64,000 nucleotides of DNA from the NCBI GenBank assembly GCA_002269645.1, contig NIVC01001438.1, forward strand, positions 62,001 to 126,000, in the 5' to 3' direction. The position numbers and the translations under genes were made by a program. The stretch comes from Macrostomum lignano. Taxonomy: Eukaryota. Shown one piece after another: positions 51,262 through 55,991 of this stretch; position 1 is the first letter of the stretch; every line of letters starts with the position of its first letter. The notes under the pieces are model-generated. The model saw only the letters and a program-made list of their open reading frames with translations, had not been told where the DNA came from and ran no database searches.

Positions 51262-51875
51262 ACTACGTAATGTGCAGAAACTGCCGGGTTTTCAGAATTT
51301 TGACGCAAAAAAATCGCAAATTATACTACTATCTAAAAAATGAAGTAAGTAGTATATGAAAACGCTATCCTAAGCGTGATATGCGTATATGTATTCGTAT
51401 ATGTACATTAATCCTTGTACTCATAAATGTACATTAATTCCATGTACATTCATACCTATCTATCCCAAATTGTCCATGTCTATCCCAATTCTATATGTAC
51501 ACAGTACATACTTCTACATTAATCTACATGTACAGTGTTATACATTAATCCCCAGACGGCCCACGCGTATGAATCACCAAGATTACATGTACAACTCGAA
51601 ACCCTACTACATGTACAGTTGTACAATCTCATCCAAATGAGTCAACATTCAAGTTTTACAAACCACGTTATATACATATTCCTATTTATATGTCAATTAT
51701 TCAAAACCTACATGTAGCTGATTACACTATATACTACCTTTAGTAGAGTTACAAATCAAGATTCTAATGAAAAAGACTGTATTCATATAGTTTTCACATT
51801 TGAAAAGTGTATATTTTCATTTCAATAGTTGAAACAGAGAGCAAAAACAGCAAGGAGACAACAGCAAGTTGAGAC

Positions 51876-52340
51876 TTAATTATAGCCTGTACTACCAAAC
51901 CCCCCTGCACCGCGAATTGAGTGGCTGCTACTGGAAGCATCCTCCTCATCGCCATTCCCTCTATAGAGATCCCTTACAACTACGGGAGCAATCATTACAC
52001 GCTCCAAAACTAATTGAGCGATACGGTAGCCCCGAGTTATGAACCAGTCCGCATTGCCATGATTAAATATCACCACAGTCAATTCTCCAGTATGGTCAGG
52101 GTCAATCACGCCGGCGCCCACTTGTATAGACTTGCGCAACGCCAGCCCAGACCGGCCGGCAATCCGAGCGTAGGTCCCATCAGGCGGTTGGATTGAAATT
52201 CCGAGAGGAACTTGCGCAACTGACCCGGCCTGGACAACAGCATCTTCAGAGGCAAAGAGATCATAGCCAACAGAGCCGATCGTCTGGCGAGCCGGCGGGC
52301 GAGCACCTTCAGTCAGCAGCGACACCTTTAAAGCAGCCAT
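51876..52340 (-). CDS. dut: Trimeric dUTPase, intronless, 154 aa
   Basis: All five motifs present: GYDL, GRSGLA, GVIDPDHTGE, IAQL, RGAGGFGSTG. Confidence 0.95.
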   Translation of the reverse strand: MAALKVSLLTEGARPPARQTIGSVGYDLFASEDAVVQAGSVAQVPLGISIQPPDGTYARIAGRSGLALRKSIQVGAGVIDPDHTGELTVVIFNHGNADWFITRGYRIAQLVLERVMIAPVVVRDLYRGNGDEEDASSSSHSIRGAGGFGSTGYN

Positions 52341-52406
52341 GATGACGTAGCTGGAATTGGTAAGTTTTTGGGGTTATATTCAGTCGCAGTGTTTACACAC
52401 GGAATG

Positions 52407-52414
52407 TTTTATAG
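52407..52414 (-). promoter_or_regulatory. TATA box upstream of dUTPase
   Basis: CTATAAAA on the minus strand about 70 nt before the ATG. Confidence 0.55.
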
Positions 52415-52839
52415 TTTTTTTCATTCATTCTAAATATCATTACTCGAAAAAATGGTAAAATCTCAGCACAATATTCAAATTTTACAAAACAATTTATTTT
52501 AAACTAATGCGCGAGGTGCATACACAACATTAATGATATAGCAAGTTGAGATATAATACGAGGTGCATGAAATTTAGACTGAGTGCAGACACAACACTTG
52601 ATGAAAACAAGATATGTACAAGGTGCATGAAAATAAAAATGCGTGCAGACACAACATTAAACTGTCAATATTAACAAAACCCCGAGTCTGTCCATGTCTT
52701 CGGCTATCTCATCATGGAGCTCAGCCTCATATTCGGCCCTCTCCATTTTCGCGGTGTAATAAGCCCGCTCCTCAGAGGGGCTGCCAAAACAATAGTCCGC
52801 TAGCTAGAAAAGGGAATGGGTGGAAAAGTTTTCCGCTAT

Positions 52840-53100
52840 AATGCATTGAAATTTTGAATCTGCAGTTCAGTTAGTTTTTAGCTGCAAAATGAAAAGTTTC
52901 GGGTAAAATGCATTGAAATTTTGATTCTGCAGTTAGTTTTTAGCTGCAAAATGAAAAGTTTCGGGTAAAATGCATTGAAATTTTGATTCTGCAGTTAGTT
53001 TTTAGCTGCAAAATGAAAAGTTTCGGGTAAAATGCATTGAAATTTTGAATCTGCAGTTAGTTTTTAGCTGCAAAATGAAAAGTTTCGGGTAAAATGCATT
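52840..53100. repeat. 62-bp tandem repeat, about 4 copies, between the two cargo ORFs
   Basis: Unit aatgcattgaaattttgattctgcagttagtttttagctgcaaaatgaaaagtttcgggtaa; period 52891/52953/53015. Confidence 0.95.
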
Positions 53101-53794
53101 CATGGTAAAATCTGCAATTATTTACCATGTCCGAGTCAGTCCAAAACTCTTGGTAGGCGGCCTCTTCATCGTCGTCAATAGCAGCAGCAGCAACCTTTCC
53201 ACTAGCAGCGTCACTACTGTGCTGCAGCCCCATCCGAGGGGCTAAATTGATGCCCAATCGGCTGCTCTTCTTCTTCTTCTGCTTCAGACCGCTGCGGTTT
53301 CCCAACTCAACAGCTGCAACAACAGCAGTTGCGGCGGTGGCGGCTTCTTCGGCTGCGGCAGTGGCAACACCCCATTCTTCATTGTTGGCGCCTATTAATT
53401 CACAACCGTTGCCGGGCTGGCAACACTCGTTGCCGCAATAAAAGCCACCGCACCAACCTACGAATTCGTCGCCATTGGAGCTGCTGATGCTGCGGCTGCT
53501 GCTGCGGTTTGAGCCCTCGCACTCGTCGTCGTCGTCGTTGTCGTCATCCGAAACTTCCTCAACGACTCGAAAACCGAGTTGTTGTGTAGTGCGAGGCTGC
53601 ACTCGGCCTACTCGGCCGCCCCCAATCCCGTACCACAGGATTGAGGGTGATCGGCCCACACGACGTAGCGCTGCTGCCGCCGCTGTCACAGAGGGTGGCG
53701 GTGATAGAACCTCCTCTGTAATAAACACTAGCCGCTGGCGCCGCTGATCTACGCCGCCGCTGCTGATGCTGCCGCTCATGCTGCTGCTGTTCAT
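53057..53794 (-). CDS. Orphan ORF, 245 aa, acidic/low-complexity with a small Cys cluster
   Basis: ATG preceded by a TATA box, no recognisable domain; GWCGGFYCGNECCQPGNGC, DDDNDDDD and KQKKKK tracts; the last ~15 codons run into the 62-bp repeats. Confidence 0.5.
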   Translation of the reverse strand: MNSSSMSGSISSGGVDQRRQRLVFITEEVLSPPPSVTAAAAALRRVGRSPSILWYGIGGGRVGRVQPRTTQQLGFRVVEEVSDDDNDDDDECEGSNRSSSRSISSSNGDEFVGWCGGFYCGNECCQPGNGCELIGANNEEWGVATAAAEEAATAATAVVAAVELGNRSGLKQKKKKSSRLGINLAPRMGLQHSSDAASGKVAAAAIDDDEEAAYQEFWTDSDMVNNCRFYHECILPETFHFAAKN

Positions 53795-53856
53795 TGTGAT
53801 AAGTATGTTGATCGCGAATTTCGATTTGAAAAGATTTTCCGCGCGCTGGGTCTCTC

Positions 53857-53864
53857 TTTTATAG
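53857..53864 (-). promoter_or_regulatory. TATA box upstream of the orphan ORF
   Basis: CTATAAAA on the minus strand about 65 nt before the ATG. Confidence 0.55.
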
Positions 53865-54425
53865 TGATTTTGAGCGGCCTCCTATTGGCTCCCCCGGCCT
53901 CACAGCCCCCCGCAAGCAAGCCAGTCTGCTGTCCGTGCCCAAACCCCAACCCACCAATACGAATGGGGCCAGAGGACCCATCCAACAGAATCGAGTCAAT
54001 CTTTTACCAAATCGAGCCCTTGTCTCTCCCAGGCCTCTCTCTCCTACACATACCCCAGAAAAGTGACTCATGAGGCGGCAATCAGTTTGACAGGTTCAGT
54101 ATACTGACTTGGCAAAACAGCCAGCACCCAATGGTCAATGGACTCGTCTTCGCAGCACAGGCCTATTTTGAATAAAGCCAAAACACCCCCCCTTTTCTCT
54201 GACCAAACCTTTCCATTCTAGCCGTCAACGAAATTCGACCGGCCTTCTTTCTCAATCCAATGTACATTTTGACGAAGCAAGCAGATTTTTTCACAGCACG
54301 GACCCATATACTGAGCCTCCTCCTCCAACCAAAACCCTATCTCTGATTACGTCGTCTATACATCCCCATAGAAGCAGTTAGCAAGAAAAAAATTTCGATG
54401 CACATATATGAACAATGCGAACCAA

Positions 54426-55280
54426 GCAAATCAACTCAACAACTCAACTCAAGCAATTCAACACAGTCCTGCATTTGGGGTCTTGACTTAGCTGCAGGGG
54501 GCTCCGTGCGTCCGGAAACAGCGAGGAGGCGTTGCCGCCCATTTCGCTAACTCCTGGCGACCACGGGCAGCTACTGCTGCGGTGTCGCGCTGGGAGTTCC
54601 GGTGGCGCCGGCGTCCGCAGCGCGGTCCCCCTCCGGAGAGTCCAGGAGGTGGATTGTCGCTCGCCCGGTAGCCCTTAGGTAGCGGACGAGCTGGCAGAGA
54701 TTCTCGGGCCTGAAAACGTCGGAGAGGTCCGGGTTTGGGCCGAGGTAGGTGAGCCTGTCCTGAGTAAAGGCGGGGCATTCACAGATGAAGTGCTCCGCAT
54801 TCTCGACACCGGAGAGGCAGAAAGGGCATTCCTCACTGCGGATTTTCTCCTGGAGGTAACGATGCCTGGCAAAGCAGCCATGACCCGAGAGGGCCATGGT
54901 AACCGCCCTGATGTCCCTGCGGTTGAGTCCAAGCAGGGCCCTGCGAAGGGCGGGGGAGGGACAGGGGACAGCCGCGCGGGATTGCCGGCAGTCGGGGGCG
55001 TTAGCCCACCTCTCCCTGTGCTTAGAAGCCACCCACTGGTTGATCCGAGTGGTGACAACAGCGATGGGGGTGGGGGCCACGGGCAGGGGACCAGTAAAAG
55101 AACCGGTCGAGCCAACCTTAGCCAGGCGATCGGCCAGCTCGTTGCCGGGGTGGCCCGAATGCCCGGGGATCCACCTTAGGGACACCTTGTTGGAGGCGCC
55201 TAAGCGGTTGAGCTGCCCGATGCAGTCAAGTAAGTCAAGCATTTGGGGTCTGACTTGGGGAGAGGCTTGGATGACGCAAC
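54426..55280 (-). mobile_element. 5'-truncated RNase H-bearing non-LTR retrotransposon (R1/LOA/I-group-like) 3' end
   Basis: [21 protein letters not shown] (RNase H end), [22 protein letters not shown] zinc knuckle; (TTGAG)-like tail near 54430-54455. Confidence 0.9.
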
Positions 55281-55991
55281 CTCCACCCCATCGCTTGGCG
55301 AGAGTTTGTACAGGCCCGCCTCTATATGAAAGTATGTGTATTTTATAAGTGATTTCGAATAAATTATCAGCATATTCAAACCTACATTCTCCGAGGGTGA
55401 AAATGTACATACCTAATTTTTGGGGTATGTAGCGGATATGAGTATAGAGGCTATCGATGTACATATAGACTCCGACCAGTATTATTCAAATCTGTCTCTG
55501 AGAATGTACATTGGAAATATACATTACGATGTGAGCTATACAATTAGTTGACTCATTTGGTAGTAGATGGGATTGTACAGCGTATAACTGTACATGTAGT
55601 AGGGTTTCGAGTTGTACATGTAATCTTGGTGATTCATACGCGCCAATTTTTGGTATATGGACAGTTAATATGGACAGTTAATTCTGCGTACACCAATGCT
55701 GCATTGTGCGGGGCTGGGGGCGCGCTCGCTTCTGCGTACACAACGGCTACGGTGAAGCGCTAATTATGCGTACTATATTGTACTGGTCGTCGCTTCTGTA
55801 CGACAGTGTACACTGATTACATGTATAATTAGATTTACATGAGATTTACATGCATAAATGTCTCACATAATGACTTACAGGGTCTGGACCAATTAGAAGA
55901 GGTCTAAGGTATTTAGATAGGGGTTGAATTTGCATTGGCTCTGACACCCACCTCACCTCCAAAATCAACCACAATCTGCACATTACGTAGT

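Follow-up and report, generated by a model that had tools for sequence, protein, structure and literature searches.

A short dUTPase-bearing element in Macrostomum lignano, probably derived from a Maverick/Polinton-type virus-like element

Positions 51262-55991 of a 64,000-nucleotide stretch of the genome of the flatworm Macrostomum lignano (contig NIVC01001438.1, positions 62,001 to 126,000 of the forward strand, assembly GCA_002269645.1; hereafter the window) hold a 4,730-bp segment that is bounded by perfect 17-bp terminal inverted repeats (TIRs) and carries genes for a dUTPase and for a protein related to the N-terminus of a DNA polymerase gene model. A preliminary description, made from the sequence alone, had recognised these termini, a second inverted repeat inside them and a (GTCT)n microsatellite on either side, and all three were recovered here with the extents listed in Table 1. 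Within the window, the TIR matched at two places only, even with up to three mismatches allowed, and such a pair was reached in 0 of 100 shuffles. All coding capacity of the element lies on the minus strand. The two genes described before are indeed co-oriented, but a third open reading frame (ORF) stands alongside them and one of the two may contain an intron, so that the earlier picture of a pair of intronless genes holds in part. Pfam searches with the element's ORFs of at least 45 codons revealed neither a transposase nor an integrase (rve) domain—bearing out the view that a transposase is absent—and no match to a capsid, packaging ATPase or maturation protease; 4.7 kb leave no room for the virion-module genes of a Maverick.

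The second gene, a 245-codon ORF, had been taken for an orphan, a label that one significant homologue now removes. Searching 1.84 billion representative proteins with phmmer returned a single genuine relative, P0129 (E 2.3e-6), which in M. lignano bears the name ‘DNA-directed DNA polymerase’ (UniRef100_A0A1I8GWG8) and is 79% identical to the ORF product in the best stretch. Residues ~150-217 of the ORF align with residues ~31-108 of P0129, ahead of its polymerase part. The Smith-Waterman score of the pair was 156, whereas 6,000 shuffles averaged 30 and peaked at 54-62, which argues that the similarity is not compositional; the two sequences are homologous. P0129 itself matches the Pfam family DNA_pol_B_2 (the organellar/viral, protein-primed type) with an E value of 1.1e-5 and 25.0 bits, just below the cut-off of 25.8, and exonuclease and polymerase motifs are visible in it by eye. 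The rest of P0129 found no other match in the window by tblastn. A word-indexed search with the same 245-residue query had come back empty because low-complexity words filled the candidate list, and it was the exhaustive HMMER search that found P0129. The other phmmer match, P0128, is a repetitive low-complexity protein and was disregarded. The ORF product matched no Pfam family, its single-sequence AlphaFold model contained no confident fold (mean predicted local distance difference test score, pLDDT, 36.6), and scanning viral_contigs with P0129 gave no match. Looked up as exact sequences in a contig index, the two proteins of the window and P0129 were not on record.

A second M. lignano contig places a polymerase of this type next to a dUTPase. 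P0026, a dUTPase of the same species, is located on NIVC01004009.1 (locus L027, positions 1-9446, cut by the contig end), a Maverick/adintovirus-like locus in which the dUTPase gene directly follows PolB and is accompanied by PLA2-like and P-loop ORFs (Table 1). PolB and dUTPase follow each other in L027 in the order and orientation that the element shows for its PolB-linked fragment and its dUTPase, and both dUTPases lack the motif-3 tyrosine and have an extra linker before motif 5. The PLA2-like gene (PLA2X) has been described as characteristic of the virion module of adintoviruses and Polintons, and related midsize linear double-stranded DNA viruses have been noted to carry dUTPases (PMC8502044). 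With such enzymes borne by elements in Macrostomum (L027) and by some Polinton-related viruses (PMC8502044), the presence of a dUTPase, which had been thought unexpected in an animal TIR element, loses much of its strangeness. Sequences similar to the PLA2-like and P-loop ORFs of L027 were found neither in the element nor elsewhere in the window, and viral_contigs held no match to the L027 PolB. P0026 carries the name ‘hypothetical protein’ in NCBI; lying inside a virus-like element, it is not to be taken for a host enzyme.

Two origins had been proposed beforehand, a gene-capturing transposon of the Pack-type CMC/CACTA kind and an integrated piece of a DNA-virus genome or of a virus-like element, and both the match between the ORF and P0129 and the PolB-dUTPase order in L027 favour the latter. 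On balance, we consider the element probably to descend from a Maverick/Polinton-type, adintovirus-like element, either as a non-autonomous deletion derivative or as a relic left in place. Such a derivative would have kept both termini, the 5′ portion of the PolB-linked gene and the dUTPase gene, the latter under a TATA-like promoter of its own, while the polymerase body (in one large deletion), the integrase and all virion genes would have been lost; the 62-bp tandem array and a 5′-truncated non-long-terminal-repeat (non-LTR) retrotransposon fragment would be later gains in the interior. The insertion of either the parent or the derivative would have been the work of an rve-type integrase that came from the element before its deletion or from an intact relative; the target, a (GTCT)n array, would already have existed, and a short duplication, with 6 bp as a compatible length, would have been left behind. 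As it stands, the element would be unable to replicate or to insert itself on its own.

Every Polinton, by definition, has genes for a protein-primed DNA polymerase (pDNAP) and an rve integrase (PMC5499653). Since the element encodes neither, it is not a strict member of the group but at most a putative derivative. It resembles Maverick, Polinton and adintovirus genomes in being TIR-bounded, in being compatible with a 6-bp duplication and in retaining a gene whose homologue is the N-terminal part of a gene model, from the same genus, for a protein-primed PolB. It differs in size (4.7 kb as opposed to ~12-25 kb), in lacking polymerase domains, an rve integrase and genes for capsid, ATPase and protease, and in carrying a dUTPase, which does not count among the core genes of Mavericks. 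Animals of many kinds have been reported to contain adintovirus/Maverick sequences in a degraded state (PMC8502044).

A number of observations weigh against this descent. No DNA similarity connects the element's window with L027, the element's dUTPase is only 50% identical to P0026, and the rare residues common to these two enzymes show no excess over controls. The link to PolB spans ~65 aligned residues, and P0129, being a computational gene model, could fuse an upstream gene with PolB; even then, the homologue of the ORF would directly precede PolB in the same orientation. Polymerase, integrase, capsid and exonuclease sequences were found neither in the element nor elsewhere in the window as a piece of a Maverick. 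Short motifs clustered in the subterminal regions, such as those described below, are more typical of cut-and-paste transposons. The perfect TIR measures only 17 bp and the two ends are patchily rather than uniformly similar, and a 6-bp duplication is uninformative within a 4-bp repeat. Vertebrate Mavericks have 6-bp target-site duplications and TIRs of 46-1447 bp, and their end motifs, (AG)3 / (AGT)2, are unlike that of the element (PMC8097293). One copy of the element was seen, and related DNA or a close protein turned up in neither the viral nor the metagenome collections; in particular, the extended TIR and the core of the subterminal repeat had no match in viral_contigs.

The dUTPase has its best relatives in PDB among yeast, plant, Dictyostelium and chlorovirus enzymes (~1e-30), and all five conserved motifs can be aligned. 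The motif-3 tyrosine, which in the family lies over the deoxyribose, is replaced by histidine and the motif-2 proline by glycine, each change being seen in 0 of 120 relatives, and 12 extra residues form a linker ahead of motif 5. While the protein clearly belongs to the family, its sequence leaves its activity uncertain, the two substitutions falling at otherwise invariant positions of catalytic motifs. Identity to the closest relatives reaches only 50-55%, and the enzyme sits on a long branch about equidistant from its 120 best matches (p-distance 0.45-0.48). Three of the four top matches inspected lie in metagenome contigs resembling nucleocytoplasmic large DNA viruses (NCLDVs); in the metagenome contigs L001, L007 and L008, the dUTPases P0001, P0004 and P0007 adjoin NCLDV capsid, PolB or mimivirus-type DUF genes. 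Given the small score margin of these NCLDV-contig relatives over cellular dUTPases and the equal distance to all 120 matches, we draw no conclusion as to a giant-virus origin. Scanning viral_contigs with the dUTPase gave no match, and the metagenome scan returned generic dUTPases only, at no more than 57% identity over partial lengths.

Compared with the trimeric dUTPases of cells and giant viruses, with which it shares the five motifs, the best PDB relatives and the top matches in NCLDV-like contigs, the element's enzyme stands apart by its identity of at most 55%, the histidine and glycine substitutions and the 12-residue linker. Retroviruses and LTR retrotransposons, among them the giant Gypsy elements of planarians (PMC6431247), provide further examples of trimeric dUTPases borne by mobile elements, in the latter case also in a flatworm. 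Their enzymes are domains of a Pol polyprotein, whereas the one described here is the product of a free-standing gene with its own promoter, in a unit that has neither an LTR nor a reverse transcriptase. An acceptor-like TTCCAG (52341-52356, minus strand) ends 10 nt 5′ of the dUTPase ATG and could serve as a site of cis-splicing or of spliced-leader trans-splicing. Trans-splicing is common in the genus Macrostomum.

The TATA-box-like motif CTATAAAA occurs five times in the window, both strands together, and two of these occurrences lie 63-74 nt 5′ of the ATGs of the dUTPase and of the second gene, on the coding strand, as the preliminary description had pointed out; L027 contains no such motif. 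The repeat arrays that had been said to separate the genes were likewise found, one of 62 bp x 4.4 and one of ~60-67 bp x 3. A GT...AG model spanning the 62-bp array, from a donor ATG/GTAAAT to an acceptor TTTTCTAG/ (slashes mark the exon boundaries), connects the 245-codon ORF in frame to a putative second exon. The GC content of this exon is 50%, whereas the array and the intergenic DNA that flank it have 32%, and by this splice model the second gene may hold an intron that spans the array. The putative exon has no homologue, and the joined two-exon protein is without a Pfam match. Neither this exon nor positions 53795-54480 nor either subterminal region showed significant similarity to L027 or P0129. 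No ORF of the internal stretch 53865-54478 matched Pfam, and Rfam families had no match in the window.

The third ORF carries the C-terminal part of a non-LTR retrotransposon (Pfam RNase_H, 1.4e-7) that is 88% and 65% identical to the M. lignano proteins P0126 and P0127, respectively, and 56-63% identical to metagenome homologues. Its kinship with the M. lignano proteins, which are its best named relatives, speaks independently for a Macrostomum-like host. Reverse transcriptase and endonuclease are absent, and the fragment is thus 5′-truncated. Relative to its two M. lignano relatives it shows one frame change, and the retained ORF contains no stop. A direct repeat of ~35 bp (81% over 26 nt, extendable) is present twice in this fragment, which is homologous to long interspersed nuclear elements (LINEs), at 54458-54500 and 55226-55266.

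Table 1 Features of the element, its flanks and the M. lignano locus L027. Positions in the window refer to its first letter as position 1; TRF, Tandem Repeats Finder; IR, inverted repeat.
Sequence	Feature	Position	Strand	Remarks
Window	Left (GTCT)n arm	51058-51261		Target/neighbour sequence, outside the element; TRF period 4, 51 copies, 96% matches
Window	Left TIR, ACTACGTAATGTGCAGA	51262-51278	+	100% complementary to 55975-55991
Window	Left subterminal non-coding region	51279-51875		33% GC; TGTACA/ATGTACAT cluster 51401-51625
Window	Left subterminal IR arm, 83 nt	51564-51646	+	302 bp from end
Window	dUTPase, trimeric type, 154 codons, uninterrupted ORF	51876-52340	-	Pfam PF00692, 5.1e-30
Window	CTATAAAA, TATA-box-like	52407-52414	-	67-74 nt upstream of dUTPase ATG
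Window	AATAAA, sole minus-strand copy in element	52493-52498	-	Downstream of putative exon 2
Window	Repeat, ~60-67 bp x 3	52516-52660		Intergenic/3′ untranslated region
Window	Putative exon 2, 48 codons	52660-52803	-	Predicted from the splice model; TAA stop 52657-52659
Window	Tandem array, 62 bp x 4.4	52823-53100		Within putative intron; TRF 94% matches
Window	245-codon ORF, no internal stop	53057-53794	-	Related to N-terminus of P0129, polymerase body absent
Window	ORF stretch matching P0129 residues 47-108	53144-53299	-	tblastn, 41/64 identical, E 9e-9
Window	CTATAAAA, TATA-box-like	53857-53864	-	63-70 nt upstream of ATG of second gene
Window	Internal DNA, no gene assignment	53865-54478		49% GC
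Window	Non-LTR retrotransposon fragment, RNase H + Cys/His C-terminal region	54479-55308	-	tblastn extent
Window	Third co-oriented ORF, carries non-LTR fragment	54571-55464	-	Overlooked in the preliminary description
Window	Right subterminal non-coding region	55309-55974		40% GC; TGTACA/ATGTACAT cluster 55307-55625
Window	Right subterminal IR arm, 96 nt	55547-55642	-	349 bp from end
Window	Right TIR, 17 bp, reverse complement of ACTACGTAATGTGCAGA	55975-55991	-	
Window	Right (GTCT)n arm	55992-56948		Neighbour sequence; TRF period 4, 239 copies, 100% matches
L027	PolB, protein-primed	660-3173, apparently continuing 3434-4024		DNA_pol_B_2, 2.3e-19, plus Endonuclease VII-like domain
L027	dUTPase P0026, intronless	4407-4904		Directly follows PolB, same orientation
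L027	PLA2-like ORF	5034-5474		Same orientation; parvovirus-type PLA2 domain, Pfam 3.9e-7
L027	P-loop ORF, Walker-A motif	5467-6273		Same orientation
L027	Weak rve match	9009-9446		Opposite strand

At the junctions, which read TCTGTC/ACTACG...CGTAGT/TCTGTC (slashes mark the element ends), the last six bases of the left microsatellite arm equal the first six of the right. With ends read as ACTAC, the array stays in phase only if 2, 6 or 10 bp were duplicated. The 2-bp TC duplication suggested in the preliminary description therefore preserves the phase, but so would 6 or 10 bp: TCTGTC on both sides is compatible with the 6-bp duplications of Mavericks, and within a 4-bp microsatellite the three lengths fit alike. 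Reading the left end as CACTAC leaves the right end mismatched in its first base and calls for 0, 4 or 8 bp to keep the phase. The CACTA-type end proposed earlier thus fails on the broken motif at the right end and on the phase, which excludes a 3-bp duplication and allows 2 bp only with the ACTAC reading. The assignment to a Pack-type CMC/CACTA transposon finds no support in the form proposed. No match to the 17-bp TIR was found in L027.

Tandem repeats occupy ~26% of the whole window and ~27% of the window outside the element, so that an insertion into a repeat is not remarkable in itself; with random insertions often landing in one, no targeting of microsatellites can be inferred. A bolder version of a Maverick origin would make the element a member of a miniature family that is moved in trans by intact relatives, maintains under selection a dUTPase altered in its catalysis by histidine in place of the sugar-gating tyrosine, and integrates preferentially into (GTCT)n, a proposal that we regard as doubtful. 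If it were true, the element would in effect act as the satellite of a virus-like element in a flatworm, endowed with a nucleotide-metabolism gene of its own and a sequence-specific target.

Inward of the TIRs, the palindrome TGTACA (18 occurrences in the element) forms dense clusters at both ends, and seven of the nine occurrences of ATGTACAT in the window fall within the element. With respect to the subterminal inverted repeat, the clusters of the two motifs are on the outside at the left end and on the inside at the right end, and they also occur within both of its arms; this difference in position implies that the ends are not simple mirror images. The core of the subterminal repeat comprises 61 nt at 98.4% (51564-51624 and 55582-55642), and two further blocks lengthen it to 51646 and 55547, respectively. 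A collinear 26-nt block with 81% identity is common to both ends, and collinear inverted blocks reach ~385-445 bp inward of the element ends, the DNA between the 17-bp TIR and the subterminal repeat being mostly dissimilar between left and right. Parvovirus-like terminal hairpins could be ruled out, as the terminal 69-139 nt folded no better than shuffles (z-scores of -1.8 to +0.5). Bidnaviridae and parvovirus-like genomes resemble the element in their 4-6.5 kb length, inverted termini and link to the Polinton-type PolB lineage (PMC8502044), whereas the element is without terminal hairpins, NS1, capsid/VP or PLA2 and has an N-terminal PolB-linked fragment only.

Clustered subterminal palindromic motifs are typical of the subterminal repeats to which transposases bind. 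Together with the shortness of the perfect TIR, at 17 bp, and an interior that is a mosaic of unrelated pieces, the dense TGTACA/ATGTACAT clusters in both subterminal regions speak for a non-autonomous, Pack-type cut-and-paste TIR transposon of some other superfamily, mobilised by a DDE transposase encoded elsewhere. Such a carrier would have captured from a Maverick-like element the dUTPase gene together with the 5′ portion of the PolB-linked gene, the LINE fragment being added at a later time; the phase of the microsatellite also permits duplications of 2, 8 or 10 bp, depending on how the ends are read. The absence of transposase, the short TIRs, the subterminal motif clusters and the mosaic interior with gene fragments are indeed shared with Pack-MULE and Pack-CACTA elements. 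The cargo, however, does not consist of recognisable intron-bearing host genes but of a virus-like gene pair in native order with its own promoters; no transposase remnant is present, and the CACTA reading founders on the right end and on the 3-bp duplication. As the two genes keep promoters of their own and stand in the order and orientation of PolB and dUTPase in L027, deletion offers an easier explanation than two separate captures, and we consider the Pack-type origin unlikely, if worth keeping in view.

The subterminal repeat also invites a reading of the locus as two nested units: an inner, gene-bearing element of 4.08 kb (51564-55642) with TIRs of 83 and 96 nt and a CCA duplication, inserted into an outer element of 651 bp, similar to a miniature inverted-repeat transposable element (MITE), that would own the 17-bp TIRs and be the unit inserted into (GTCT)n. 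The trinucleotide CCA stands directly outside both inner arms (51561-51563 and 55643-55645), a coincidence expected by chance in 1/64 of cases; moreover, the inner repeat is the longer one and the only long, well-conserved inverted block, and the DNA between it and the 17-bp TIR differs for the most part from one end to the other. Three matching bases are weak evidence, though, and a 3-bp duplication would not suit a Maverick-type integrase. The occurrence of TGTACA clusters outside, inside and within the arms suggests one related terminal system, and the 26-nt collinear block at 81% joins the outer parts. A nested pair therefore appears rather improbable to us.

Simple repeats and duplications make the assembly of the M. 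lignano genome notoriously difficult (PMC5730564), and the two arms of the microsatellite are unequal, with 239 perfect units on the right and 51 at 96% on the left. A mis-join of two (GTCT)n arrays, or a collapsed repeat mimicking an insertion, is nevertheless very improbable: perfect 17-bp TIRs exactly at both junctions, with flanks that are in phase, are not what one would expect of a random mis-join, and the element itself is real in any case. Just as hard to credit is a resident host locus in which a divergent, intronless dUTPase paralogue and a neighbouring gene lie between chance inverted repeats, for despite the TATA-like motifs at both genes, the downstream AATAAA at one of them and the intact dUTPase ORF, the exact inverted termini stand right against the two halves of a microsatellite, the match of the second gene is to a PolB gene model, and the dUTPase is no closer to P0026 (50%)—itself part of a virus-like element—than to other relatives.

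Beyond the element, the BEL/Pao, Gypsy and piggyBac-like ORFs of the window are in keeping with an animal genome rich in repeats. Some 1.8 kb past the right microsatellite arm lies a Gypsy-type LTR retrotransposon (58731-63986, minus strand) with a gag-protease ORF and a reverse transcriptase-RNase H-integrase ORF, in which no dUTPase match was found; a second Gypsy-type integrase fragment is located at 18633-20048 (minus strand). A BEL/Pao pol ORF occupies 953-4003 (plus strand; Peptidase_A17, 8e-50) and a piggyBac-like transposase ORF 27457-28404 (minus strand; DDE_Tnp_1_7, 1.6e-37). An ORF at 9218-10177 (minus strand) encodes a von Willebrand factor type D domain (2.8e-15) and is possibly an exon of a host gene, while a long ORF at 29956-32466 (plus strand) runs over 21-bp and 69-bp tandem repeats, has a weak match to the UPF0547 zinc ribbon and is probably driven by the repeats rather than a gene. 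The larger tandem arrays are a nested one of 18, 87 and 105 bp (12772-15494), (TAGA)145 (16458-17038), a 23-bp unit repeated 70 times (41952-43589), 4 kb of (CCCTCTCTCT)n (44241-48264) and (GAGCGG)155 (48812-49739).

To be gutted is an ordinary fate for a Maverick, and what is modestly new here concerns the dUTPase: an element-borne enzyme with an unusual active-site substitution, and the occurrence of Maverick-like elements with a dUTPase in Macrostomum. A puzzling TIR element devoid of a transposase thereby becomes recognisable as what is probably a stripped-down relative of the Maverick/Polinton virus-like elements. L027 indicates that Macrostomum flatworms carry Maverick-like elements with a dUTPase gene just after the polymerase gene, an arrangement in this genus of which we found no report in the literature that we searched. 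Short derivatives of such elements probably add to the large unclassified repeat fraction of Macrostomum genomes.

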